A stretch of 61,025 nt of DNA, filler included, from Bipalium vagum (taxonomy: Eukaryota), in NCBI GenBank assembly GCA_037834085.1. It is 3 parts of 3 records of this genome, joined end to end, with 100 filler letters (N's around TTAATTAATTAA, not from the genome) between each part and the next. Parts side by side here need not be neighbours in the genome. Positions count along the whole stretch, not along the records: positions 1 to 25,423 come from JBBMKC010194386.1; 2 more parts are not named here. One strand, written 5' to 3'. Shown piece by piece: positions 1,742 through 25,523 of this stretch. The translations under genes were made by a program, and so were the position numbers. The stretch's first letter is position 1. Each line of letters starts with the position of its first letter. The notes under the pieces were generated by a model. It ran no database searches, was not told the DNA's origin, and worked only from the letters and a program-made list of their open reading frames with translations.

Positions 1742-2275
1742 CAGGTTTATGCAGAAATATATAGAAAATTTTTCAGAAATATATAGAAAAAATATTCTGT
1801 CTCAAGAATTTTCGTGTCATGACTTATTCCAGAAAGCGATTAGTCAGAGTTCCCAAAGAGAGAAATAATAGGAAAACCATTGAGGCTAGACAGTTTTATG
1901 CGAGGGACATTGAGTACATTAACATTGTAAACTGGTTTTTTAAAGATGAAACAGGAGTCAACTTACACCAAACCAGAAGTTTTTGCCACCATACTCGTCT
2001 CAATTAAATCCGATCGAAGAGTTTTTCAGCAGCTTTAAGTTGCAAATATCTTTCTTTATGAGAACCATTATAGATCGGGACCATTTAAAAGAATTGATTA
2101 CCCAAGTACTCATGCTTGACGATATCTATTTAAGTGATTATTTTCGCAACATAAAGCCTTGGCGAGACAAGAATTTAGTCCCGTAATGTTTTATTGTTTG
2201 TATATGTATATTTCCACTTGTGTATTTGTTATGATATATTTTGAATATTTTTCTATATATTTCTGCATAACCCTG
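1742..2275 (+). mobile_element. Internally deleted IS630/Tc1-type DNA transposon with TIRs and TA target duplication
   Basis: Left end TA|CAGGTTTATGCAGAAATATATAGAAAA and right end TTTTCTATATATTTCTGCATAACCCTG|TA are inverted repeats. Internal fragments are SRKRLVRVPKERN...FKDETGVNL (first catalytic D) and LPPYSSQLNPIEEFFS (C-terminal E motif). Confidence 0.85.
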
Positions 2276-3259: not shown

Positions 3260-3309
3260 TATTTTAATATTTTATCTTAATTTATGTTATTCAAAAAATT
3301 TTTTTCTAG

Positions 3310-3747
3310 ACAATCGATTGATTTTTGAATTTCAAGTGAAATTTTATCCACCCGAAATAGGAATGGTTAGCGAAGACCTGACCAGATATTATTTAACTCT
3401 CCAAGTTAGACAAGACCTAGTGTGTGGAAAGTTACCATGTTCATTTTATGTATATATTATTTTGGCTTCTTATATAATTCAATCAGAAGCTGGAGATTAT
3501 GATCCACAAAATCACCGTGGTATAGATTACATAAAAAATCAGCCATTAGCACTAAAAAAATTCCAGACAACAGAATTTATGGAAAAAGTTGTAGCATTAC
3601 ATAAGTTACATCGGTAAATTTTTAGTTATAATTTTTTATTAATATTATTTTTAATCAAGAGGCCAAACTCCTGAGGAAGCAGATAAAAATTTTCTGGACA
3701 ATACCAGAAAGTTAGCCTTATACGGAGTTGATGTTCACAAGGCCAAG
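3310..3747 (+). CDS. FERM central (B) lobe exons of the 4.1-like gene (3310-3613, 3660-3747)
   Basis: The supplied ORF 3318-3617 continues after a 46-nt GT-AG intron into GQTPEEADKNFLDNTRKLALYGVDVHKAK. Confidence 0.92.
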
Positions 3748-6700
3748 GTAAGTATGTTAAAAATGCAGTTATCATAAAAGTTTAACAAATGTTCTTAACT
3801 TAAGTCTAAAATTACTAGATTGCGTCATATAAAATATTCTATTTCATTAGTTAAATTTTGCAAATGTTCTGCTGACATTTAGAGAAAAGCTGCAGAAATA
3901 AATTATTTTGCACTTTAAAATCCTCTTTCTTTTACGTTTTTACATTTTTATGGTAATATATGGCAATGTCGATTAAATTCAAATCAAACCGTTCGGGATC
4001 TTGCTAAAATGTCCACTTTTAGTCGCAAGACATTTGAAAGCGTTTGGTATGTTAGAAAGACATCTTTTTCATTTTTATCTATTTTTATGTAATCAGACGA
4101 TTCATATGAAAACGTAATAGTATCACAAAAACTATCTAGTTAATATAATAAAATGAAAAATTCTGAATATTTATATATTTTATATATTAATAATATTATA
4201 TATCAGTAAAGTAAATTGAAAATATTCTTTCATGTACATGCAATCTTTCACAAAGGTTATTGGCTCTTCATTTCTATTCAAAATAATTTGATTTAAAAGA
4301 AAAAAAGATTTTCGCCTCTTAGTGATTGATATTTATAGCTTATGATTATGGTATTAGATAGCTCATTATCATAACTGAACTGAATACTTTGAATTCCAAG
4401 GCAGTAGTATTTTAAATATTTGTAATTCCAATAAATTAGAGGTACTAAGTTATTTTATCATCATATACATTAGAGACCTGAGTGTTGGATATTCAAATAA
4501 TGACTTTATAAACTTACTTTTAAAACTCAAAAATAATATTCTTAGAATATCTCACCATTAAAGAATTATTTTTAGAGCTTCACAATTCACAAATTGTTTT
4601 AATTTGTCTCATACATTAATTTTATGAATTTACCGTTGCATTACCTCCGAGTAATGTATTATTTTCCATGATATCAAATCGAAAAGATTAATCTTAATAA
4701 ATATTAAAATACAAGCAATTTCACATTTCTACTATATCGGAATGATTAGATTAAGAAAAATATATGCTTATTATGTAGTGACCAATAAGCATAATTTTAA
4801 ATACCTATTAGTCGACTTTATAACTTTGAGTTCGTTAAATTTTCTATAGCTTAATTTTAATTCGGTTCATATTTTTATCTTTTGATTAATATCAAATTCG
4901 AAAATACAATCCCCGCCAAAAGTCTTTGGTCACTCTTAAAATTCTAGAAACAAGCATTTATATGATTCTAGTCATTAATATTTATTAAGTACAAATGTAA
5001 AGAACGTTAACGACATTAGAAAATATTATTAAATCATTAATCAAAATTTATCAATAAAAAAATAAATAACTAAAAGATAAGCTAGGCTTTTTTACATGGT
5101 GGCCAAAGACTTTTGGCGGGGACTGTATATAAAATGCCTGATTAACCGACACTTAATAATGACATCACCATATAAAGTTTGTGTGGATTACTGATATAAA
5201 TGGATTAAGTATGTATAAATAAATTTAAAATGGTTTTATAATGAAATTTTATATTTCGTCTTTATTAATTTTCTTTGAATTGATTATTTCCTCTAAAAAT
5301 TTATAACTTTTAAAATCCAAAATTTTTATTGATAAAAATGTATTTAGAGCATGTTTGCTCTATGAATTCAAACTTGGGTTTATTACTTCAATACATGTCG
5401 TAGGATATGATTCCTTGAAGGAGAGAACATATCAAAAATGGTTTGCAAATTTTTCGAACGGTGATGAGTCTCTTGAAGATGAGTCTTTTTGAACTCATCT
5501 CTCTTCTCCGTGGGCTCAAGTCTCCGGGATAACAGGAGCTTTTTGTAGTGGTGCTTGAGGTTCTCTATGATTCTTTGATCCATTGGTTTCGAGTTGGTTT
5601 TAGTGTTGGGTTTGAAGAAGACTAGTTCAGTGTTGCTCATCTGGCCAGCAAAGTTATCTAGACAGATCATCACTCTGCACCCATGCTGGCTGAGTAGTCC
5701 GTCCCCCGTACACGCTATCTCCTCGAGAAGCTTTGTTGTCATCCATGTCTTCAAGTTCGCCTTTTACTTGATCGGGATCTCCTTCTTCTTGAAGGTAAGA
5801 GGTCTTTTGGAAGCGTCAATCACCAGAAGTGGAAACTTCTTGCTGCCACTCATGTTTGCGTCAACTAGTAGAGTGATCTTTTGTTTGCTTTTCTTTCCTC
5901 CTATACACTGCTCTTAAGGCAGATTATCATAAAGATATCTGTTCAGTATAAGATTATCAAAAGAAAGGAGTAAGGTAGGTCCATTAACAAAAAATAAATT
6001 TCCCTTACAAAATTTTTTAGTGTCTGTGTCTATCAATTCTGAAGAATATTCATCTCAGTTAGCAGATCTTAAGGTTACCACCCATTCCAAACGACTTGAA
6101 TTGACTAAATGGAGGGCGTTGTTTTACATCATAATAATGACATACAACACGTTTTATTGGTTTTGCGCAAGTAGTCCGGTGTTTTCATGGATTGGACTTT
6201 ATAATGCATTCATCATACTTAACATTGTGTGTTGTGGTTATCATTTATTCCGACCACCACATAAATTAAGCGGAAGAGATTTTGATTCATTTGAGGCCAT
6301 CAAAACGTAACTAGATGATTCTCTTCAGTCAAACAATTTCCATCAGCTTGGAATTTTTCAGTTGTGTGATATAGCGAAGAATAATTCATAAGGGATTATA
6401 TTTTGATTAACAAAATTGTTAAACTTCTTATTTGAAATCGAAAGGACTTTGCGGTTGACCTAATAATAAATATTTATCATAATCGTACTTTATGTGCAAA
6501 ATATTTTTTTCAATATGTTACTGTTGAATCTTCATTTCTTTTCAGAACTTTTATTATTTGAGACCTAACTGACATTCTATTAATTAAAATAATATCTCAT
6601 CAGTGATGAATTATATAATTTCAAAAACTAATCAGCTTTAAGAACATTAGCATTTCTTGAAATCGACACCAGCTAATAGATTAAAATATACTCAAACTTT

Positions 6701-9700
6701 ATCTTTTCTTTTCCTGATTTATATCACAATCATTTTTTTAAACTAATCTTGATCCAAGTAAAAACCACCAGCTTAAACTTAACTTTTCTCTTTGGTTATT
6801 ACCAAATCAAAATTAAATTTAATATCCGAGAAATTGATTATTGATAAATTTTTCCTTTTCAGAAAGATTTTCTATAGTCAGTTATTCAATGTTTATTTGT
6901 AAATAATGCGAAATAAATAAATAAAATAAATAATAAATATAATTAATTAAAAGTATTTTTCAGATTTTACCGAAACAAAACTGTACCGGTTTTCGTTTTA
7001 TTTCATGATCAGAATAATGTTGAATTAAGATTCGAAAAGTAACACGATCAACTATTGATTTCTTATTTATCAATTATTTGAATATCAATCATGTATAATT
7101 AACTAAAAATGGTACATAAAATATTCTCATTATTTCCTAAACAAACACAAGCTTGATATCATCAATAATTTTCCAATGGTTTGTTGATTAAGTGAATGAG
7201 AATTATCTACACATATATAATTTTTCAGCCTTTTGCTTTCGTTATATTCAACTGCATAGATACATAATTTGTAAATAAAACAATAGATGTTTTATCTAGT
7301 CATTACAATGACGAGACAGTCATATTTTCCCTTTATTTCTAATTTATGAGAGTCGATTTTGAGCTATTTTCAAATAACATGTGAAAATATTATAACGTGA
7401 GTGTCGATATTTAATATTCTCTATTCGTTATTTTTAATCTTCTCAACACATATTTTTTGTTATCGTGAGTTTCATACCTATTTCTAGAACTCAGATGGAG
7501 AAGAAATATTAATTGGAGTTTATTATGGGGGAATTGTTCTCTACAAGCAAAAAATAAGAATAATTCGTTTTTCGTGGGCGCGATTAATTCAAGTGAGTTA
7601 CAAGAAAAAGAGACTGATAATCACAGTGCGAGGTGTTAATAAAACAGATTCTAAAAAGGAACTGATATTCAAATGTTCAGATATTAAATTAACAAAACGA
7701 TCTTACAAAGCAATTGTCGATCATCATTATTTTTTCAGGTAATTTTTTTAAAAGATAACACAATTAGTTTTTGCGTTGCGGCTTGAGTTTTGGCTTTACT
7801 TTCATATTTTGTAATCGGATGATCTCACAGCTCATTAAAGCACATCAAATTGATTTTTTTACAAAATTTAAATCTAAATTGTTTTTTATATGTTCGAGAC
7901 TGGATGCCTTATTGCGTGTTTTCTGATAATTAACACTTTGTTCCGTCATAAAGTTTTTATTTCAGCCCACACTTTTTTTTCCTTTCAATATTCTTGAAAT
8001 AATATTGGATGGAACTCTTGCATACCTTTAGAGTTTATTTTACACACCTGAAGATTTTACCCATATCTTTGTAAGCTTCAGCCACATCAACCATAATTAT
8101 TTAATAAATTTAGTTTGAAATGGGAGCAAGAATAAATTTAAGTCAATAAAATATTTGAATTATTTAAAAAAATCATTTTAAATTGAAATTATTGATTTAA
8201 ATATACCAAAATTAGCATAAGAGCTGCATATATCTTCGTGCATGATAAGAAACTTTAAAAACTAAAAATTATTTTTGTAAGTTGACAAAAATTTTAGGGT
8301 GCGGAAAAAAATTTTGTCGCGCTATATTTTAGATTTCCAAAAGTTGGTTAAGTGTTCTTTGATTATATTATAAAAAATAATAAAAGCAAAATATTTTTCT
8401 TCGGAGAGGTTTATTATGAAATGTCCATGAATTTGAATAAAGTTAAGAAACACGTGTGACAAAGGATTTATTGGAGAAATAAAAAACTGACACCAATAGT
8501 CAAAAATATATGTTGAATTCTCATTGAATTAGAAACGACATTAATGAAGTTTTGTTGATAGTGACATTTACACAGATCTTAACATTTATTATTAACTTTT
8601 ATTTATTATCAGTTTGATAAATTTTATCTAATTGGTAATTTAGAAGTTAGAAATTGATTTTATCACTCAAAATATTTAAGTAGTTTGTTCCACCAAAGTT
8701 AAGATATTTAAAATTCAATTATTCTAATTTATTTCAGACTTTAAGAAGTTTGTTTTGGATTTTTACGACAATTGGATTATTAAAGACTTTCCGATGCAAT
8801 ACAAAACTTAGAAATTTTTAAATTCATTTAAAATCTTTATAAATGTAATTCATGAAGACACGCTGATTAAATACTTTCATACAATACACAAAATTGATAT
8901 TCAATTGGTTTTTAAATAAATGTTATTTAATAATATATCACATTTTAAACAGTATGGAAAATTTGTGTGACCTGTTGAAAACAGAGATCTAAAGAAATAT
9001 ACCTTTGTCTTCTTTGAACTTCTTTATACTAAAAGAAAATTATTTTCCGATAATTACCGGAGAAAATTAATTTTTTATATTAGAGTACTACAGGTAAGTG
9101 CAATCAAAGAATTAAAAAATCAATTTTTTAACAGTCTTGCAAAAATAATTTTATTTAAAAATGTTTTATTTATATTTATTTTTTATATAAATGTATGGTC
9201 TGCTGACATTTAAAATGCATTGATGAATTAAATATTATTAATAAAAATTATAAAAAAATAATTATAGTAATAATAATTAAATAAATATTAATAATAAATA
9301 AAAATTGCAAGGAGTTTAATTTTTGTTGATTTCATTAGAATATATGTAACATAATTTTATTAAATTTAACTATTTCGTAAAATAAGCATGAAATTAAAAT
9401 TTTTAGGAAAAAATTGTTTTATTATTAATATATTGTTTTTATCTTAAGTTAAATATTTTTAATAAATTAATAATTCATAATAAATGAAATATATGCTGGT
9501 GCAATATGTTTGTAGACAAGGTAATATAATTACTAAGCCACTTTTATTACACTCCCGGCTAATATTTTGTTTTCAATCGAATTATTGATTCGGAAAATCC
9601 TTTGAAAATATAAATATAAATATTAAAGTAAAAATACAAAATCTTTAAAAGGTTAGAAAATACTAAATTTATCTAAAAACGAAATTTGAGTAATTCATAT

Positions 9701-12700
9701 AATAATTAACAGACTGCCTTCTCTTAGTCACTAATTGTTTGATATCCAAAATATAAAATTGGATTTGGCAGAAATATTATTGTCTACGAAAAAAAAGTTG
9801 ATTTAAAATTCTCATCAGTTAAACTAGGTCAACTGTGAGGTAGAAAGATATTTCATAATATAAAATTTTCTATGGTTTTCAAAATATGTAAAAATCTTAT
9901 TGGTTTCGGGGAATGGTTTTTATCGTTTACGATAAACTTAGAAATTCAATTGTGATAAAAATTGATATTCTTTTGGAAAATTAAGTGTTAAGATTAATAA
10001 TAAGAGGCTTTTTTAATTATTTATATATTATGAATATATTTTATCACGAAATTTAATAATTAATATTAAACTTTATATTTCAATTATGATAAGTATTTAT
10101 TTTGTTAATTTTAAACCAAATTTTTTTTGTGAGAATAATTAATGTAATGCTCCTGAAGTTGGAAATGTTCAAAAGAGAATTTTATATTCATTTATGTAAG
10201 AGTATTATTTTCAAGGCTGCTGTAAATATCAAATTTCGTGATGACATGAAATATTAAAAATTATTTTATTTGTATAATAACAAAAAAGAGTTACTGCGTC
10301 ATCCAATAATCAATATCATACAAACAGATTCTGAATTATTTTAAAATAGAATGATTGAATTCGGAATTCCGAAAAAACCAAATCTGCAACCAGGTTTTCA
10401 CACAAGAAAATATTATAAAACACCAACATCAGCTTCTCCAACAATGGGTGGGAAATTCAATTATGACAAACCAGCCGGTTCTAAAATTAAACGATTGCCA
10501 CCTGCGAGAAAAGAACAAACTGACGATGGTAGTTTTTTGAATTAGAAACATTAAAATCATTTAAAAAAACCTTTGCTTATATCCCAATCATTATTAATCT
10601 TCGATTTCATTACTATTATCTTAAAAGAATTCTTAAGTTTCATATTTTTAGGTTGGTACACGTTACCCATGAAAAATGGAACAATCACTAAAGATGGTAA
10701 ATTTATGTTTTATTCCGATATTATATATAAAGTATAATCGGGATTTATTATCTTATAAACATTACGAATTTAAATTTATGTAAATATATATCTGAATTGA
10801 GAAAGATTAAGGATTTTTTCGTTTGAGTCGATGGTAATTTATAATTTATATATACTTTCCCTGCTTTCCTGTAATCAGAAATAATTAAACTATGAAGTGA
10901 AGCTGACAAACATTGATTAATATTATTTAATCCGGGAGCTTTAGAACTGTGGACTAAAATGAAGTAGTTAGTCCAATAATTATTTCAAAAATAAACTTAT
11001 TTTGATTATTATCTATGGAAATTCAAAGACTGTCACAGTTTCCTATCGTTTGTCAATCATTTGCAATATTTTCCCATTAAAATAAAAGTACGTTTTGATA
11101 AAAGAAAAATTTGTTTATAAATCATCTTATAAAGGATATTTGCTAAGACTTTGTTGAAGATTCGTCCGTATTTTTTAGAAAAATGAGAAGTGAATTTAGT
11201 GCAATTGGATATTATTGGAATTTGAAGTCATTTTTGGTCTAATTTCTATATTTCAATGTCTTATTCAAGATTTCTTAATAAATGTTTTGAAAAATGTTTC
11301 CCAGCAATAAGAAACTTTAATTTGCTTGATTTATTTTTTGACATTTCTGATAATTTTTAATCCTTTGAATTAATAAGATTCAGAAATTTTCATTAGTTGT
11401 GATACTTTCAAATTTAGAAGATTTTTCAAAAAAGTTTTCTAACACTGAAATCTAAATTCAGCTACAGGAAATGTCAGAAGTATAAATATTTAGGATTAGT
11501 TTTGTTTCATATTATTAAAATATTTTAATGGATATACTAAAATTAAAAAATAAAGAATGTTAAATGTCAGATTTTTCATGCTAAATAACTGGTTTAATGT
11601 TTTGCAGCAGGTACTACTAGTTCTTCATTAGTGATGAATACCAATCATTCTACGCAATATTCTCCAAAAGCACAAAGAAAATCAAGCACAACTAATTATC
11701 AACAATCACAAAAAATACCACTAAGTTTAAATGAACGTCCAACATTACCTCATCTTCAATGGAGAATGTCGCCAGCAGATTGTACTCTGAGTCTTGGTAT
11801 GGACGACAAAGGTCTGGACATCGCATCTCAACATGGGGCAGGATGGCAAGTAAATTACTTTTCATTTTTAATCAATAATTTAAAAATATATTTTTATAAA
11901 TAAATATATTATTCAAATTTCATTAATTCTTATTTGATTTTATTTTGATTAATTTTATTGATTCATAAAGGAATTTAATATTTCGTTAATGATTTTATCT
12001 CAACTAATTCTTTTTTAAATACTTATAGTTAAAAATACCACTTGGATTTGGAAATTTCTGTTTTGATATTTAATTAAATTTATGGTATTACTTTCGAACC
12101 TTGTTTCTTATAATAACACTTATTTTAAAAATCAATGACTTTTAATTTTAATGCTATTATTTAAAATCACTCCCTATTAAATTAAGAATTATTATTTATC
12201 TTTGAGTAAATCGATTCTAAATTGAAACCTAAAATAATCATATACGTTTTTTAATTGTCAATGCCATTTTAGATTATTTATTTAAGTTTTATGTAAATTT
12301 CTAAAACGGCATTAATATTAATTTCATTCAAAACAATTTATTGAGTCATTTATTTGTAGACAAATATCTAAAAATATGTATAAATGAGATGAATGCTTTA
12401 TCCTTAGTTTATGCGATTGTTTTAAATAAATTTTATAATATTTGTAACATCTGTCAAACTATTTCAATCTTAGAAATATTTTTTACAATGCTTAATGAAG
12501 TAAAAAATTTAAATTATTTCTTTTTATTATGAGAACTTAATTTTAGTATTTTTGTTAACTGGACAATATTTCAATATTAAACCAGTTTTTTTTATTTTTA
12601 AAATTCCTTTTTATAATATAATTATTTAAATTAATGAACATTTTTATATTTAATATTTTGATAACAAAGAAAATGTTTTCTTTTAATTTTTTAAAATTTA

Positions 12701-15700
12701 CAATAAAAATTGATTTATTATTAGTAAGTTAATTGATTAATTTTAATTAAATCGATTCCAAAAGTATTTAAAATTCTTTCAGATTGCTTCAAATTTCTTT
12801 CAAATTACGAACAATGAAAAATATTTTTTAGAAAAAAATTTAAAATTACCACAGCACGAATTATTATTTATAATCGCATGAAAATTATTTGATTTAATTA
12901 GGTTATGTAATATTCATAATGATATAGTTTTTTACTTTGATTCGTTAATTTTAGGGATGTCGTTCTAACAAAGGTGTTAAAACACCTGGTGAATATTTCT
13001 ATGAAGCAAGGGTGCTTGAAGATGGGTTTGCAAGAATAGGTTGGGCCACAAATGATGGTAATTTAAGACTTGGTACTGATGAAAATGGGTATGGTTATGG
13101 TTGTGATGAAAATGGAAAAGGTTGGGGTGATAACGTCAACGGAATTGCAATGCACGATAACAAAACTAAAGAATATGGAAGTGGTATAAACGTTGGAGAC
13201 TATATTGGATGCCGAATAAATCTTAACAGTGGTGAATTGGTCTGGTATAACAATGGGAAATCTATGAATGTCGCATATAAAATTCCGGAACAGTTCCGCA
13301 AGGAACCAATGTTTCCAACACTAAGTGTCAAAGATGGTCGAGTTGAATGTAATTTTGGAAATTCACCTTTTGCATATCCACCATCAGATTCCGAAACTTG
13401 GATTCCTGTATGCCAAGCTGGTGAAACAAACGAGGTTCCTAATAAGTTTATAGGATGGAAACTAAATGCATATGATGCAACAAATTCATTAGATATTTCA
13501 CCAGAGGGTCTAATGATTCAATCACAGTTTAATAAAGGCTGGCAGGGATCAAGGTGTAACAAGGTTAGTTTTAAATTATTAAAAAATTTAAAAGTTTATT
13601 GTTTTGATTTATTTTGTAAAAAAAAGTATTACATCTCCAATTATGTTTGTGGAATAATTTCGAAAATTAAAAAGAAATCAAATAATAAAACGTTGCTAAT
13701 CCTTATTAAAAGCCAATCAGTTTTTAAAATTTTTCTGTACATAATTTTATCAACAATGCAAATTGTCTCTTGACGATATTATCAAAAACGGAGCTTTAGG
13801 AATTTTAACGAAATCATGCTAAAATCGCATAATTTAAATATTACACCAAGTTTCATGATAAACACTCTTATTTATCAGGATTCAGAGACTGAGTGAAAGC
13901 AATAGAAAGCCAATCATTGAGTAAAATTTTGGAAGATAAGTATTTGAAATCTTTATGAAAATAAAAAAATATATATATTTTTTTATATATAAATAAAAAG
14001 CATATTAAAGATAAAGTTGTGATATCGGTTACGGAAAACGATTTTAATGTGGGTATGTAATATTCAAATGTAAAGTTGTTTTTTTAGTACGGCGAATGTG
14101 TGTCGGTTAATTCTATAGGGTGCGAAATACGGTTTGCCCCACCATTATTTAGTGGAATAATAAGAAACATAGAAGATCTTCATTTGAAAAACTTCATTAA
14201 TTTTAAAAAAATCTGATTTTTATATAAAATATTAAAAATTAAATATAAATTTCAAATTTCTAACGAAGATATTTTTAAAATTCATAAAACGGGGCCAAGT
14301 ATAAAAAGATCTGTTACAAATGGATTCAGAAAATTTAAGCTTTTACCAACAAAAAAAGATTTTAAAAAATAAAAATAATATTTATTTGTAATATTTTGCC
14401 TGCATCCCGTTATTTAAAATAAAACCGTAAATGCGTTGAGGTATAAATTTAGCAAGGTTCTCCAGTATTTAATATTTAGTTATTATTTTTTTGGATTGTT
14501 CATCATTGCAGTCTATACCCCTTAGGAATTGATTACACCATAAATTATCTAGAGGGTAATCGGTAGCCATGGTAGATCGTAATTATAGAATTTAGATATC
14601 TATCAGTGTTGTGTATAAATTTTAAGGAGGTCTGTTCTTGATTCTTTCGGATTGAGATATTAATTAAGTTTTATTAACATTGACATTATTTTTCACCATT
14701 TAAACAATACTCGTTTTCAAGTTAGACTTGAATTTTTACAAATTTTAGGTTTTGAAATTTGATTTTTAAAAACTACGTTTATGTAATGAAGTTCAAATTA
14801 ATTCAAAATTTGTATAATTATGATATCAACAGCAATGTTAAGATTAGGGATTAGATTAAAAGATTAGTTAACTTTGATCTGGGACCCAAATATAATCATA
14901 TTACGAGTAAAATCAATTCTTAACTCAACCCGAACTCAAAATGTTCACTACAACCAAATTCAGCCAAAATATTGAATAGATTACATTAGTAAAAGTTTTA
15001 ATAAAATTAGGAATATTATTAATACGGTAGAATTAATTAATGTTTATAATGAGAGTACCTATAATAAATTGAATTAAGCAAAATGTCAAACAGCAGATTT
15101 TATCAATAAAGGGAGAAAAAAATTCATAAAATTTGAAAGACATATCATATTTTTGAACAACTTGTCTAAGTTCCATTACATTCTTTCACTGAATATTATG
15201 TAGTTTATGTTTGGTATTTATAGTTGTCATTTTGACACAAACTTTTTTCAAACAATTGGTTATACAGATATGTAATTAGCTTAAGTATGTGACTCTAAAA
15301 ATCTACAATTACTTTTTAATTTGTGGGATTGTTTTTAGTAACGAATAGTGTGGGCTGGTTCTTAGTAGATAAAAATTATATTCATATACATAATGTCTGA
15401 TAAAAGGCAATATTTTAGCACGTTAACATTCAAATATATCTCTTCGAGTCTTTAACTAATGCAAATGAGATATGTTGCTGATATTTCTTTGGATGATGAC
15501 AAAACCAACCAAAAATTATGAAACAATTTCCTTTAACTTCATTATTTATAAATTGCAGGATCAGTTGAATAAAATTCTTACTTACCCTTTTATGCGATAA
15601 TGTAAAAGACATTTTCTTGTATTTATTATTAATATTAATACTGAAATTTTATTTATATTAAACTTAATTTCATAGGGTGTGAAAGAGCGCGGTAAATATT

Positions 15701-18700
15701 ATTTTGAAGCAAGTCCTCTAGAAGATACCGGGTTTATTCGAGTTGGATGGTCTACTGAATTGGGAAGTTTGGATTTGGGAACTGATAATAATGGATTTGG
15801 ATATGGAGCTGATCCAGACGGATATGGATTGACAGGTAACCAAGGTAAGAAGATGTTCAATAATGACATTGAAAATTATGGAAAGGTAATTATAATTAAT
15901 AATTGTAATAATTTAACCAAACATGAAGTCTTTTGAGAAAAATGATGTCATAGGATGCTTTCTTGATCTCGATGCTGATAGAGTACAATGGTCATTAAAT
16001 GGAGAAATATATGGTCCTGCGTATTCAATACCTTTTGAATTAAAAAATGGGCCTTCAGGGTTTTTCCCGACTATTTCTCTTAAAGATAACACAGCAGAAT
16101 TTAATTTTGGAGAAAAGGCATTCAAATTTTATCCAGGAGTAAGATTTTTCTTTAAGTATTTTATAGTAATTATTTTATAAAAAGTCAGGTAACCATTATA
16201 CGAAATAGTTTTTTGTTAAAAATTAGGAAAGATATAATTTCAAAAAACAATTTTATAAAAAAAGATTCAAAAAAATTGTGTTTATCACACTGTATGTGGT
16301 AAGAGTAATCTACAGAATTACCAAAAATTCGAATGTAAAAGTAATCTAAAGCCAAGTAAATGAAAAAGCTTTTATTATTAAATTAGAATATAGGTTCTTA
16401 GCGTTCTTTAATTGAAGTAAAGTTTTGTAAAACAATGCTATTGTTATGTATAAATGAATGGAGTTTTTCATCGATAGTAACTCTAACTTCATAATCATGA
16501 AGCGAACCATCAAGTTGATGTCGGTACAATAAAGCGGTTGTAAGATACGCATGATGACAGTCTGTTCCAAAAAATACCTATGTTATTGTGTAATATAAGG
16601 TTTGACGTTATAGTGGCGAAGGTTCCTCACCGATACCAGTCATATTTTGCAGGGAGTCAAAATAAAGATTTTTTTATTTTTAGAAATTATAATTCAAAGC
16701 AAGAAAGACAATTTGCTCAGTAAAGAAATTTCGTTCCTAAAAGCACATTTGTTCGAGCGTTGGTTAATAATAAATATCTATTATGAATAAAAGCAACTTA
16801 ATCTCATTTTAAGGGAAAATATATATATTAATCAGTTATAATATATAAGAAGCGAAAGACGTTCTAAAAAATATTTAATGAGAAATAATATTATAATCTT
16901 TGATAATATAAATCAACAATGGAAGAAGTTAGAGCAATTTTATTCATGGATACAATCCTATAGCAACTATTATTTATTCATATAACACGATTATTTATTG
17001 AAATTACTCCTATTGTAAAAACTGATTGAATTAACTATTAAGTCATTTTATTGAGTTTATTTTTATAATAACCATTATATCACACTTTTGTATAAAACTA
17101 GAATGAATGGACACCACTTACATATACACCAGAACAGTTCTTGAAACAATCGCGGAAAAGAGGTCCTGAGGTAAGTTTCATTTGAAATGTATTTGATTGA
17201 TAATTTTCCCAGCGAAAAGTAAAAGCGTGGTCCTATATAAATACAGACGACAACCAGGAAATGAAATCAGGAAATGTAAGAATAACATTAAAGTTCTCTA
17301 TTAATTTATGCATTTAAAAACGTGATTTCTTATTTTGTCGAAATGAATTTTAGTTCTCTGAGAAATCTAATGCAAATAAAGACCAAAGTGTCACTAATGT
17401 AAACAATGTAATGACATCAACAAATTCGAGGCTACCAAGAATAACAGATGAACATGAAATTGAAGACTCATTTGAACCAAGTTTCGTTAATAGGACCGGC
17501 ACTCGCACCATCACAAACGGTGAAGTGACAGTATGGTTCTAAGGAAAGACGAAATTTTCATTTAATTTTTTTATTATTTAGGAAATAAGGACTGGTGAGC
17601 CTAATGTTGAGACAGAGTCCTATATTGATGAACACGGAAATCTAGTCAAAAAGATTATTACTCGAACAAAAAAGGTGACAAAAACAACTAAGACCATGAG
17701 TGAATTTGTGACTGAAAGATCAGAAAATGATGTAAGGAGTTTTATAATTTTTTAATGCCTTACCTTATGGTTTTTATTAATATTATTTTATGAATTCAGT
17801 TCTTAGTTTCTAGGTGTTAGAAAGAAATCTAAAAGATTTCTCTAAAATCATATGAGAATTGAAAAAAATTATATTTTATACCTTTATCAATTTCATGTTA
17901 TACAGTGATAAATACTATTATATAGTTGTTTTTTTGCATAATCCTAATTTCTGAAATATTTTTCTTTCAATAATTTTTGCAATATTTTAAAAATGTAGCA
18001 GTTAGTTGGCGAAAGGTATTGGGTATATGGTGAATGAGGCAGGGATTCATACCCCAACTAATTTAATTTCTATAAGGTCGGTTTTGCCAAATGCGACACG
18101 GGTTGACGCTTTCTATTGACAGATGATGGATGTTGTCGAAGTTTCCAGAAACTGTAATGAATGCAGACCACCTATTCGTCATTATTATCTTTATAATGTA
18201 GATTTTGTTTTAGACAATGTTGTGTAGCTTGATCATGGTCAAATCATTGAGCTGAGCGACACAGTTGTCATATATAATCTCCTTTTCATCGCACGTCATA
18301 ATACTTTAATATTTAATAAAATTGTGACTGTTACAAAATTATTTTTGATTATTTATATTTTTCAAACTTCACTTTTTCTAAGTTTTATTTTAATTTTCAA
18401 CTCATCAAGATTTTTATAAAACAATTTTTTGAATAGAAGTTTAAAGACAAAAGCATTGAATATTATTTGGAAATCCTTAAATAATCGAACTGTCAGCTAT
18501 TAATGACTTTCTTCAAAACAGAAGACTTGTCGTTAAATTTGTATCTATTAAAAAATTCGCGTTTCTTAATTCAAAAATGAAATTCCATTGATTACAATAA
18601 ATAGTGAGTCTCATTTTTGAGTCTTGTCAAAATGTCCTTAAAATTTAATATTACTTGTCTCCCTTTAATTTTAAAGTTTTCTAGGAAAATTTATTCTTTT

Positions 18701-19414
18701 CAGTTACTGTTAGAATCCTAAGACCACACAATATCTGATTTTTTTCTTTGCGCTTTTATACATCTAAGTAATTTGTGGTTAAATATTCTGGGTCCAAAAA
18801 TACTAGTGAATAGTCTACTGGCTCTAAAGTTCATACCATTGACATTTTAAAACATTAATTGGTAGACTATTTATTTGATTTTGTTGATTTCAAAACACGG
18901 AACTGTGGATTAATAAAAAGAAAATGAATGTTAGATCAGCTGGCCCATAAGGGAAAGGAAATAGCTTTGCAATTAAAATTTCTTTATTATCAGCCAATTT
19001 ACTTTGTCAATTAAAATTTCCACTGGAGCCCTTCTCTGAATAAAAAATTGTAATAATTTTTGAAATTCCTTTTACCAAACTATCCTTTAAATCGTGACGG
19101 TCATTCAAACGCAAATTTAAGATAAATATTTTTGTTTTTCATAATTTGAATCATTTTAGGTTGAGACAACGAGAGCAGAGAAAATATTGAGAATCAGTCG
19201 AAATGAAATTGAAGATTTTGATGATGAGGTGATCAGTGATTCTGATTTTTCCCATTGTATAACATCAATTGTGTTTCAGTTGTTAAGGAACGCCATTCTT
19301 GCTGTTACAAGCATGAACAGTAGCGCAGCAGTCCTCAACGATTATGTCGGGTCCCTAGAATTTTCCGCGACTGAAAACAGAAATGCATCAAAATTAATGG
19401 AAAGCGAAATATAG
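3310..19414 (+). CDS. Protein 4.1/Coracle-family FERM protein with two internal DDX1-type SPRY domains and a 4.1 C-terminal domain (5'-partial, 15 exons visible, about 932 aa)
   Basis: Phase-consistent GT-AG exons: 3310-3613, 3660-3747, 7488-7738, 10350-10528, 10652-10696, 11608(or 11611)-11849, 12955-13563, 15676-15885, 15929-16138, 17102-17170, 17213-17275, 17354-17530, 17582-17731, 19160-19228, 19280-19414 (TAG). FERM motifs: FQVKFYPPE..EDLTRYYLTLQVRQDLVCGKLPCS, GQTPEEADKNFLDNTRKLALYGVDVHKAK, VDHHYFFR. These are followed by two SPRY repeats and a C-terminus VETTRAEKILRI..DFDDE/LLRNAILAVTSMN resembling the 4.1/Coracle CTD. Confidence 0.85.
4907..5125. mobile_element. Tc1-type MITE (about 220 bp, TA TSD)
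   Basis: TA|CAATCCCCGCCAAAAGTCTTTGGTCAC ... GTGGCCAAAGACTTTTGGCGGGGACTG|TA form a near-perfect inverted repeat of about 27 bp around non-coding DNA. Confidence 0.85.
5383..5917 (-). mobile_element. Tigger/pogo (CENP-B-like DDE_1) transposase relic
   Basis: The minus strand reads CIGGKKSKQKITLLVDANMSGSKKFPLLVI...*KANLKTWMTTKLLEE...CLDNFAG...FFKPNTKTNSKPMDQRIIENLKHHYKK, matching the WMT, LDN and PxN..QPxDQG motifs, with a stop and deletions. Confidence 0.85.
6050..6464 (+). mobile_element. Mariner transposase 3' relic with 3' TIR
   Basis: YHLFRPPHKLSGRDFDSFEAIKT*LDD..GIFQL resembles the mariner C-terminus. It ends in ...GGACTTTGCGGTTGACCTAA|TA, a mariner-type TIR. Confidence 0.65.
7488..7738 (+). 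CDS. FERM C (PH-like) lobe exon of the 4.1-like gene
   Basis: TTTCTAG|AAC start, then NSDGEEILIGVYYGGIVLYKQKIRIIRFSWARLIQVSYKKKRL...KRSYKAIVDHHYFFR|GTAATT. It is absent from the ORF track but in phase with the flanking exons. Confidence 0.9.
12955..13563 (+). CDS. Exon encoding most of SPRY repeat 1 and the start of SPRY repeat 2
   Basis: GCRSNKGVKTPGEYFYEARVLEDGFARIGWAT...LGTDENGYGYG...GDYIGCRINLNSG..NG...MFPTLSVKDGRVECNFGNSPFAYPP...WKLNAYDATNSLDISPEGLMIQSQFNKGWQGSRCNK, with canonical AG/GT ends. Confidence 0.9.
15676..16138 (+). CDS. Exons encoding SPRY repeat 2 (15676-15885, 15929-16138)
   Basis: GVKERGKYYFEAS..GFIRVGWSTELGSLDLGTDNNGFGYG..GKKMFNNDIENYGK | SFEKNDVIGCFLDLD..NG..FFPTISLKDNTAEFNFGEKAFKFYPG, joined by a 43-nt intron. 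Confidence 0.9.
17990..18300 (-). mobile_element. Mariner transposase relic in an intron of the 4.1-like gene
   Basis: Minus strand MTCDEKEIIYDN (TCDEKW motif) and LGYESLPHSPYTQYLSPTN (degenerate HPPYSPDLAPSD). Confidence 0.75.
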
Positions 19415-25423: not shown

Positions 25424-25523
25424 NNNNNNNNNNNNNNNNNNNNNNNNNNNNNNNNNNNNNNNNNNNNTTAATTAATTAANNNNNNNNNNNNNNNNNNNNN
25501 NNNNNNNNNNNNNNNNNNNNNNN
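25424..25523. other. Assembly gap with artificial spacer (44N-TTAATTAATTAA-44N)
   Basis: Exactly 100 nt. The central 12-mer has stops in all six frames and is identical to the spacer at 44917-45016. Confidence 0.97.

Follow-up and report, generated by a model that had tools for sequence, protein, structure and literature searches.

The DNA analysed here, called the window below, is a 61,025-nucleotide (nt) stretch from Bipalium vagum (NCBI GenBank assembly GCA_037834085.1) that joins three parts end to end. The gene of concern lies in the first part, positions 1 to 25,423, from JBBMKC010194386.1. We conclude with high confidence that positions 3310-19414 on the + strand are most of one flatworm protein-coding gene, placed in a flatworm-wide branch of the protein 4.1/Coracle family and carrying two SPRY domains of the DDX1 type. 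The gene is a new member of a flatworm-wide, experimentally unstudied family and not a one-off invention.

The gene model is a chain of 15 exons with canonical GT-AG joins and matching phases. Direct reading of the junctions and a script check bore out the chain proposed in the initial annotation, including the four junctions it had singled out. None of the 15 exons contains an in-frame stop, 4 codons (R, R, G, and A) are split between exons, and a TAG at 19412-19414 closes the reading frame, giving about 933 codons of coding content on the contig. Exon 1 begins at 3310 behind an acceptor AG at 3308-3309, and its first two bases finish a codon whose beginning is encoded upstream, in an exon not on the contig. 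Intron sizes are bimodal (42-51 nt versus 0.08-3.7 kb), and the piece is AT-rich, with a G+C content of 20-34% per kb. The only run of N's in the window (25424-25467) is outside the gene, in agreement with the earlier statement that no assembly gap interrupts the span. Two features of the model are candidates for alternative splicing: exon 5, which could be skipped without breaking the frame, and intron 14 (19229-19279), whose 51 nt are in frame and stop-free, so that retention would add 17 residues within the C-terminal domain (CTD)-like motif at the end of the protein.

The first exons encode the B and C lobes of a FERM domain, and these are of the 4.1 type as originally described. Both Pfam models exceeded their cut-offs (FERM_M with 42.1 bits against 23.8, FERM_C with 63.4 bits against 23); Pfam was run on single stop-free stretches of the + strand, and sequence searches were run exon by exon. 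In a FERM tree with PTPN3/4 as the outgroup, where the 4.1 clade has a support of 100, the FERM-SPRY family forms one clade (support 99) inside protein 4.1, among invertebrate 4.1 proteins, and exon 1 of the window falls within it (support 95). The initial annotation had taken the gene for a 4.1 paralogue, a description that does not fit this tree: all FERM-SPRY proteins constitute one clade inside protein 4.1, and this clade looks to be the entire flatworm lineage of 4.1. Past the FERM C lobe, the family motif PKKP..PGF.TRKY.Y aligns with the FERM-adjacent (FA) motif GSKFRYSGRT of true 4.1 proteins. The Pfam FA domain (PF08736) is carried by no orthologue. The spectrin-actin-binding (SAB) domain (PF04382) matched none of the scanned exons, and in the FERM search only vertebrate 4.1 proteins had it; it was absent from the entries of flatworms, molluscs, and rotifers.

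The SPRY pair follows the FERM domain. SPRY1, in exon 7, scored 57.8 bits against the Pfam cut-off of 26.3, and SPRY2 gave one match for each of its halves, 19.5 bits in exon 8 and 40.3 bits in exon 9. The best solved match to exon 7 was the SPRY domain of human DDX1 (PDB 4XW3, 3e-26; next entry 7e-11). The same structure was the best Foldseek match to a model of exon 7 with a predicted local distance difference test score (pLDDT) of 92 (2e-15, root-mean-square deviation 1.5 Å, 169 columns), with Ash2L next at 6e-10. Look-alikes of exon 7 in the ESM Atlas were generic SPRY clusters only. The stretch preceding SPRY2 also aligns with the extension found N-terminally in the DDX1 domain. A tree of 96 SPRY domains groups both family SPRYs with the DDX1 SPRYs in a clade with a support of 98, apart from the ryanodine-receptor-like and other types, and the family SPRY1s, that of the window included, form a clade with a support of 97. 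The assignment of both domains to the DDX1 type is upheld by this agreement of sequence, fold, and tree, and so is the earlier remark that no helicase motifs flank them: of five full-length DDX1-like proteins, only the SPRY insert (residues ~117-312) matches the window, and not the helicase core. The true DDX1 of this genome is a separate gene (contig C115242, locus L026, 879-2449) in which the N-terminal DEAD part, the SPRY domain, and the C-terminal DEAD part occupy consecutive exons; its SPRY domain is only 33% identical to SPRY1 of the window.

Between and behind these domains, the chain can be followed by homology. Orthologues align to the window in matching order along the whole length of the chain. 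Profiles of the orthologue linkers and tails were run against every stop-free segment in the six frames of the contig, 763 in all. The FERM-to-SPRY linker profile selected exon 6 (2.7e-20) and exon 4 (8.8e-6), in order, and the tail profile selected exon 13 as the top segment (1.4e-9) and the frame of exons 14 and 15 as the second best (2.6e-4), again in order and colinear. Homology therefore supports each part of the chain. The match on exon 4, in a segment that the Pfam FA model does not recognise, sustains the description of a degenerate FERM-adjacent segment.

Several observations weigh against reading the span as a single gene of this kind. The N lobe of the FERM domain was not found on the window's contig by orthologue alignment or in a scan of genome loci. 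The only public run with the window sequence consists of DNA contigs covering the introns, and since it is the only one public for the species, the junctions of the window rest on homology and splice signals. On exon 4, Pfam FA gave no match (E up to 1). The Pfam 4_1_CTD model (PF05902) matches neither the window nor any orthologue, exons 14 and 15 are colinear with a 4.1-CTD profile but match it weakly (E 0.4-1.4), and the last open frame of the window, compared with the PDB, did not match 8I8Y, an entry that includes the end of the 4.1 CTD, and returned a lone chance match to a capsid protein. The SPRY tree does not settle whether SPRY1 and SPRY2 are sisters. Finally, the function proposed below would follow wholly from what is known of the 4.1 family.

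A DNA-only record leaves room for two neighbouring genes misread as one, namely a short 4.1-like FERM gene followed by a SPRY-SPRY gene that starts at an ATG at 10351 or 11634. There is an ATG directly at the start of exon 4, and an older annotation of Echinococcus granulosus splits the orthologue into a "Band 4.1-like protein" model and a "Ddx1" model. We nevertheless regard this structure as very improbable. Three Logan contigs from relatives (loci L001-L003, 3.5-4.0 kb) have a continuous open frame of 1088 or 1105 residues that includes every domain; these contigs are spliced mRNAs, and they place FERM and both SPRY domains in one frame. In the window itself, exon 4 carries on the orthologue sequence immediately past the FERM C lobe, all junction phases match, and the tail behind the SPRY pair is a 4.1-like tail. 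The same order is also kept at three loci of the genome. The initial preference for one gene over two thus finds support in relatives' transcripts and colinear orthologues as well as in the locus.

The genome holds at least three FERM-SPRY-SPRY genes. Contigs C49737 and C21946 each carry FERM, SPRY, and SPRY on one strand, followed by tail exons. A further contig, C43870, has N-terminal and FERM_N exons on its - strand (~2026-1389, locus L027) that are ~90% like those of C49737. Judging by this similarity, C43870 probably supplies the missing 5' end of the window gene, in which case it should abut the start of the window. The window and C49737 are alignable in exons only. Pooled over five exon pairs, synonymous sites differ between them at a proportion (pS) of 0.67 and nonsynonymous sites at a proportion (pN) of 0.10, and the resulting dN/dS of ~0.07 implies that both copies are under purifying selection, SPRY exons included. 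These values bear on a further possibility, that the locus is a decaying duplicate, or pseudogene, of the C49737 paralogue. The closeness of that paralogue (77-91% amino acid identity), the transposon remnants upstream and in intron 2, and the absence of the 5' exons from the contig could all be read in this way. We give the pseudogene hardly any credence, because all 15 exons are open, every splice site is intact, protein change is low while synonymous sites approach saturation, and the 5' exons are likely to be present on C43870.

As for the tail, family members end in D-x-D-x-AL-x-x-AI-x-x-T-x-L-(D/N)-x-x-x-x-V, as true 4.1 CTDs do; the mollusc 4.1 sequence at this place is DFDHDSALAEAIRAVTELDPNMSV. 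When family tails were compared with true 4.1 CTDs by hhalign, the probability was 85-87% with an E of ~5e-6 over 25-26 columns. A CTD profile matches almost every family member through identical profile positions and at a constant distance from the C terminus, covers 58 positions of P0184 (E 7e-4), and does not match unrelated SPRY proteins. Set against this is the view that this is a genuine gene with a tail not homologous to the CTD, the terminal motif being independent or too short to call. The lack of a Pfam 4_1_CTD match on the window, the whole genome, or the orthologues, the weak matches of the window's own exons (for exon 14, positions 19-39 of an invertebrate 4.1-CTD profile, E 1.4), and the unmatched 8I8Y all speak for this view. 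The whole-genome result, from a six-frame search, is uninformative, as control genomes likewise gave none. A vertebrate-heavy CTD profile found nothing significant among the window segments. We consider an unrelated tail unlikely, given the profile-to-profile match and the recurrence of the same CTD positions across the family, and, with the family placed within protein 4.1 by the FERM tree, it is simpler to suppose that the CTD has been kept. On the sequence comparisons available, the tail is thus likely, but not proven, to be a 4.1 CTD homologue. Of the CTD-like end proposed at the outset, the terminal motif stands, by profile-profile comparison, while the Pfam 4_1_CTD match that had been expected was not obtained.

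The breadth of the family became apparent in a comparison of exon 7 with 1.84 billion representative proteins, of which the best 150 were examined. A tight group (P0001, P0003-P0011, and later P0035 and P0121) stood far above the rest, and most of its members have FERM_N, FERM_M, FERM_C, and two SPRY domains. The member that diverges most, P0010, comes from the runs SRR28338163/4. Among these best 150, every named protein with both FERM and SPRY is from a flatworm (trematodes, cestodes, and monogeneans). A search from an orthologue FERM domain returned proteins of Schistosoma, Fasciola, Opisthorchis, Clonorchis, Paragonimus, Echinococcus, Taenia, Hymenolepis, Spirometra, and others, all with FERM and SPRY. 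In total, more than 30 flatworm species have proteins predicted to show this architecture (NCBI, UniProt). The initial annotation knew of no FERM-SPRY-SPRY protein; the same design is in fact already widespread and annotated, under generic or wrong names, which removes the claim of a novel architecture.

Those names include "FERM domain-containing protein," "Band 4.1-like protein 2/3," "SPRY domain containing protein," and "DDX1 / DEAD box helicase 1." Annotation problems affect the orthologues P0258, P0259, P0003, P0007, P0276, and P0229. The labels DDX1 or DEAD box helicase 1 given to the orthologues from Schistosoma haematobium, Clonorchis, and Cichlidogyrus are misnomers, as these proteins contain a FERM domain and lack a helicase. 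In Echinococcus granulosus, the models EUB62652 and EUB62651 split one gene into two. Such misnamed orthologues and the split gene model can mislead helicase counts and proteomics lists. Full-text literature searches found no paper describing a FERM-SPRY 4.1 protein. The only possible trace was a proteomics table with an S. mansoni "SPRY domain containing protein," which may belong to the FERM-SPRY family.

We infer that the family arose when an ancestral flatworm 4.1 gene received, in a single event, a copy of the SPRY module of a DDX1-like gene, which was then duplicated in tandem. This fits both the SPRY and the FERM trees, and it retains the single acquisition and tandem duplication proposed initially. 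A mortalin gene of this genome is 88% identical to its counterpart in the planarian Dugesia japonica and ~81% identical to those of all other named animals, parasitic flatworms among them, so the genome is probably that of a planarian or a close relative. With a member in such a genome, the family would have originated before planarians and parasitic flatworms split, and both the gain of the SPRY module and its duplication would predate that event.

Protein 4.1 and Coracle organise the membrane skeleton and septate junctions, and the variable central region of 4.1 proteins is the spectrin-actin-binding region in vertebrates. By analogy with other 4.1 proteins, the window protein may act as a cortical adaptor under the plasma membrane, where its FERM domain would bind the tails of membrane proteins and lipids and its own tail would bind further partners. 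The two SPRY beta-sandwiches would replace the variable central region and add two protein-docking surfaces, through which the adaptor could recruit a set of partners not used by 4.1 proteins elsewhere.

These considerations lead to a broader proposal, for which we see the chances as evenly balanced: that rhabditophoran flatworms, planarians together with trematodes, cestodes, and monogeneans, rebuilt 4.1/Coracle with a DDX1-derived tandem SPRY pair between FERM and CTD, and that the resulting set of cortex partners is unique among animals. Such a change at the level of the phylum would have escaped description owing to the generic or wrong names that these proteins bear in databases. If the proposal is correct, the SPRY pair gives the flatworm cortex (epidermis or tegument, and junctions) partners found in no other animals. 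A lineage-wide gain of two docking domains suggests that flatworms wire the 4.1 scaffold differently, including in the tegument of medically and veterinarily important parasites, and the planarian copy would offer a model of family function tractable by RNA interference.

The exons, short introns, and paralogous loci are listed in the table. In the Pfam scan, there was no match in 10345-10542, 11598-11900, or 19160-19411, and the stretch 17582-17752 had two sub-threshold matches (E > 0.1) and no others. Two transposase fragments lie close to or within the gene: a DDE_3 (Tc1/mariner-like) fragment at 1819-2186 (+), upstream of exon 1, and a DDE_1 (pogo-like) fragment at 5386-5754 (-), inside the 3.7-kb intron 2 on the opposite strand. 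No Rfam match above threshold was found in the window, and its only tandem repeats are a pair of short, AT-rich arrays that lie downstream of the gene.

Table. Exons and short introns of the Bipalium vagum FERM-SPRY-SPRY gene (positions in the window) and its paralogues in the same genome; identities to C49737 are at the amino acid level unless stated
Feature	Position or loci	Strand	Assignment	Match or comparison
Exon 1	3310..3613	+	FERM central lobe (B)	Pfam FERM_M 1.3e-10 (match 3318-3614); 53-60% identity with flatworm orthologues; 91% to C49737
Exon 2	3660..3747	+	End of FERM B lobe; 46-nt intron before	FERM_M positions 86-112 (match 3655-3774); orthologue identity 55-72%; GT-AG; split codon CGA
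Exon 3	7488..7738	+	FERM C lobe (pleckstrin-homology-like), end DHHYFF(R)	Pfam FERM_C 2.7e-17 (match 7488-7739); colinear with orthologues; 85% to C49737
Exon 4	10350..10528	+	Decayed FERM-adjacent segment (IPKKPNLQPGFHTRKYY...)	Orthologue linker profile (E in text)
Exon 5	10652..10696	+	45-nt mini-exon (GWYTLPMKNGTITKD)	GT-AG and phases; orthologues have W(F/Y)TL in the corresponding position (no statistic attached)
Exon 6	11608..11849	+	Ser/Thr/Gln-rich linker, then SPRY1 N-terminal extension (LQWRMSPADCTLSLGMDDKGLDIASQHGAGWQ)	Linker profile (E in text); tblastn matches from all orthologues; 68% to C49737
Exon 7	12955..13563	+	SPRY1 core and SPRY2 N-terminal extension	Pfam SPRY 1.5e-15 (12955-13530)
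Exon 8	15676..15885	+	SPRY2, first half	Pfam SPRY positions 1-60 (match 15676-15933); orthologue identity 47-60%; 79% to C49737
Exon 9	15929..16138	+	SPRY2, second half; 43-nt intron before	Pfam SPRY positions 61-120, 3.8e-10 (15917-16177); orthologue identity 43-54%
Exon 10	17102..17170	+	Conserved post-SPRY2 segment (NEWTPLTYTPEQFLKQSRKRGPE)	Matches P0006 residues 873-904; blastn match to C49737
Exon 11	17213..17275	+	RKVKAWSYINTDD...; 42-nt intron before	Motif RKVKGWSYIDPS also in Echinostoma orthologue P0006
Exon 12	17354..17530	+	Polar low-complexity linker, end NGEVT	Open frame, GT-AG; 50% to C49737 over 38 residues; orthologue tails have NGEVV
Exon 13	17582..17731	+	Conserved tail block (GEPNVETESYIDEHGNLVKKIITRTKK...)	Orthologue-tail profile (E in text); 90% to C49737
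Exon 14	19160..19228	+	VETTRAEKILRISRNEIEDFDDE, first half of CTD-like end	GT-AG
Exon 15	19280..19414	+	LLRNAILAVTSMNSSAAVLNDYV..., CTD-like terminal motif, then TAG	Tail profile (E in text)
Short introns (n=5, 42-51 nt)	3614-3659, 15886-15928, 17171-17212, 17531-17581, 19229-19279	+		
Contig C49737	L004, L009, L013, L024, L028		Close paralogue	77-91% amino acid identity to the window gene
Contig C21946	L005, L012, L025		Distant paralogue	41-47% amino acid identity to the window gene

Elsewhere in the same genome, several differing COX1 sequences occur (contigs C253947, C246471, C253320, C38971, C246095, and others). Three of the copies (L014, L015, and L016; G+C 27-34%) are broken by TGA codons only, and the other copies are riddled with stops. 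This variety suggests that there are nuclear mitochondrial copies, that the sample contains more than one organism, or both.

The closest known counterparts of the window gene are the predicted flatworm FERM-SPRY-SPRY proteins, such as the Echinococcus multilocularis "SPRY domain containing protein" (CDS37228.1/A0A068XYB7), the Schistosoma japonicum "Band 4.1-like protein 3" (KAH8868653.1), and P0184 of Clonorchis sinensis. They share its domain order, are 40-62% identical to it per exon, and have in common with it the linker motifs PKKP..PGF.TRKY and W(F/Y)TL as well as the tail motifs PEVE.ESY.DEHG..VKR and D.D.AL..AI; the window gene also falls in the same FERM and SPRY1 tree clades. It differs in coming from a free-living, planarian-like genome, whereas the named members are all from parasitic flatworms, and in having a close paralogue within its own genome.

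Protein 4.1/Coracle (EPB41) has the same type of FERM domain, and the orthologue P0004 shares 42% identity with band 4.1-like proteins from molluscs. The window family keeps a remnant of the FA motif and the terminal CTD motif of these proteins; unlike them, it has two SPRY domains in the central region and no SAB, and it is unmatched by the Pfam FA and CTD models. The SPRY insert of DDX1 (4XW3) is the nearest solved relative of the SPRY domains by both sequence and fold, and both also possess an N-terminal extension ahead of the SPRY core. In contrast to DDX1, the SPRY domains of the window gene stand two in tandem, without flanking RecA-like helicase lobes.

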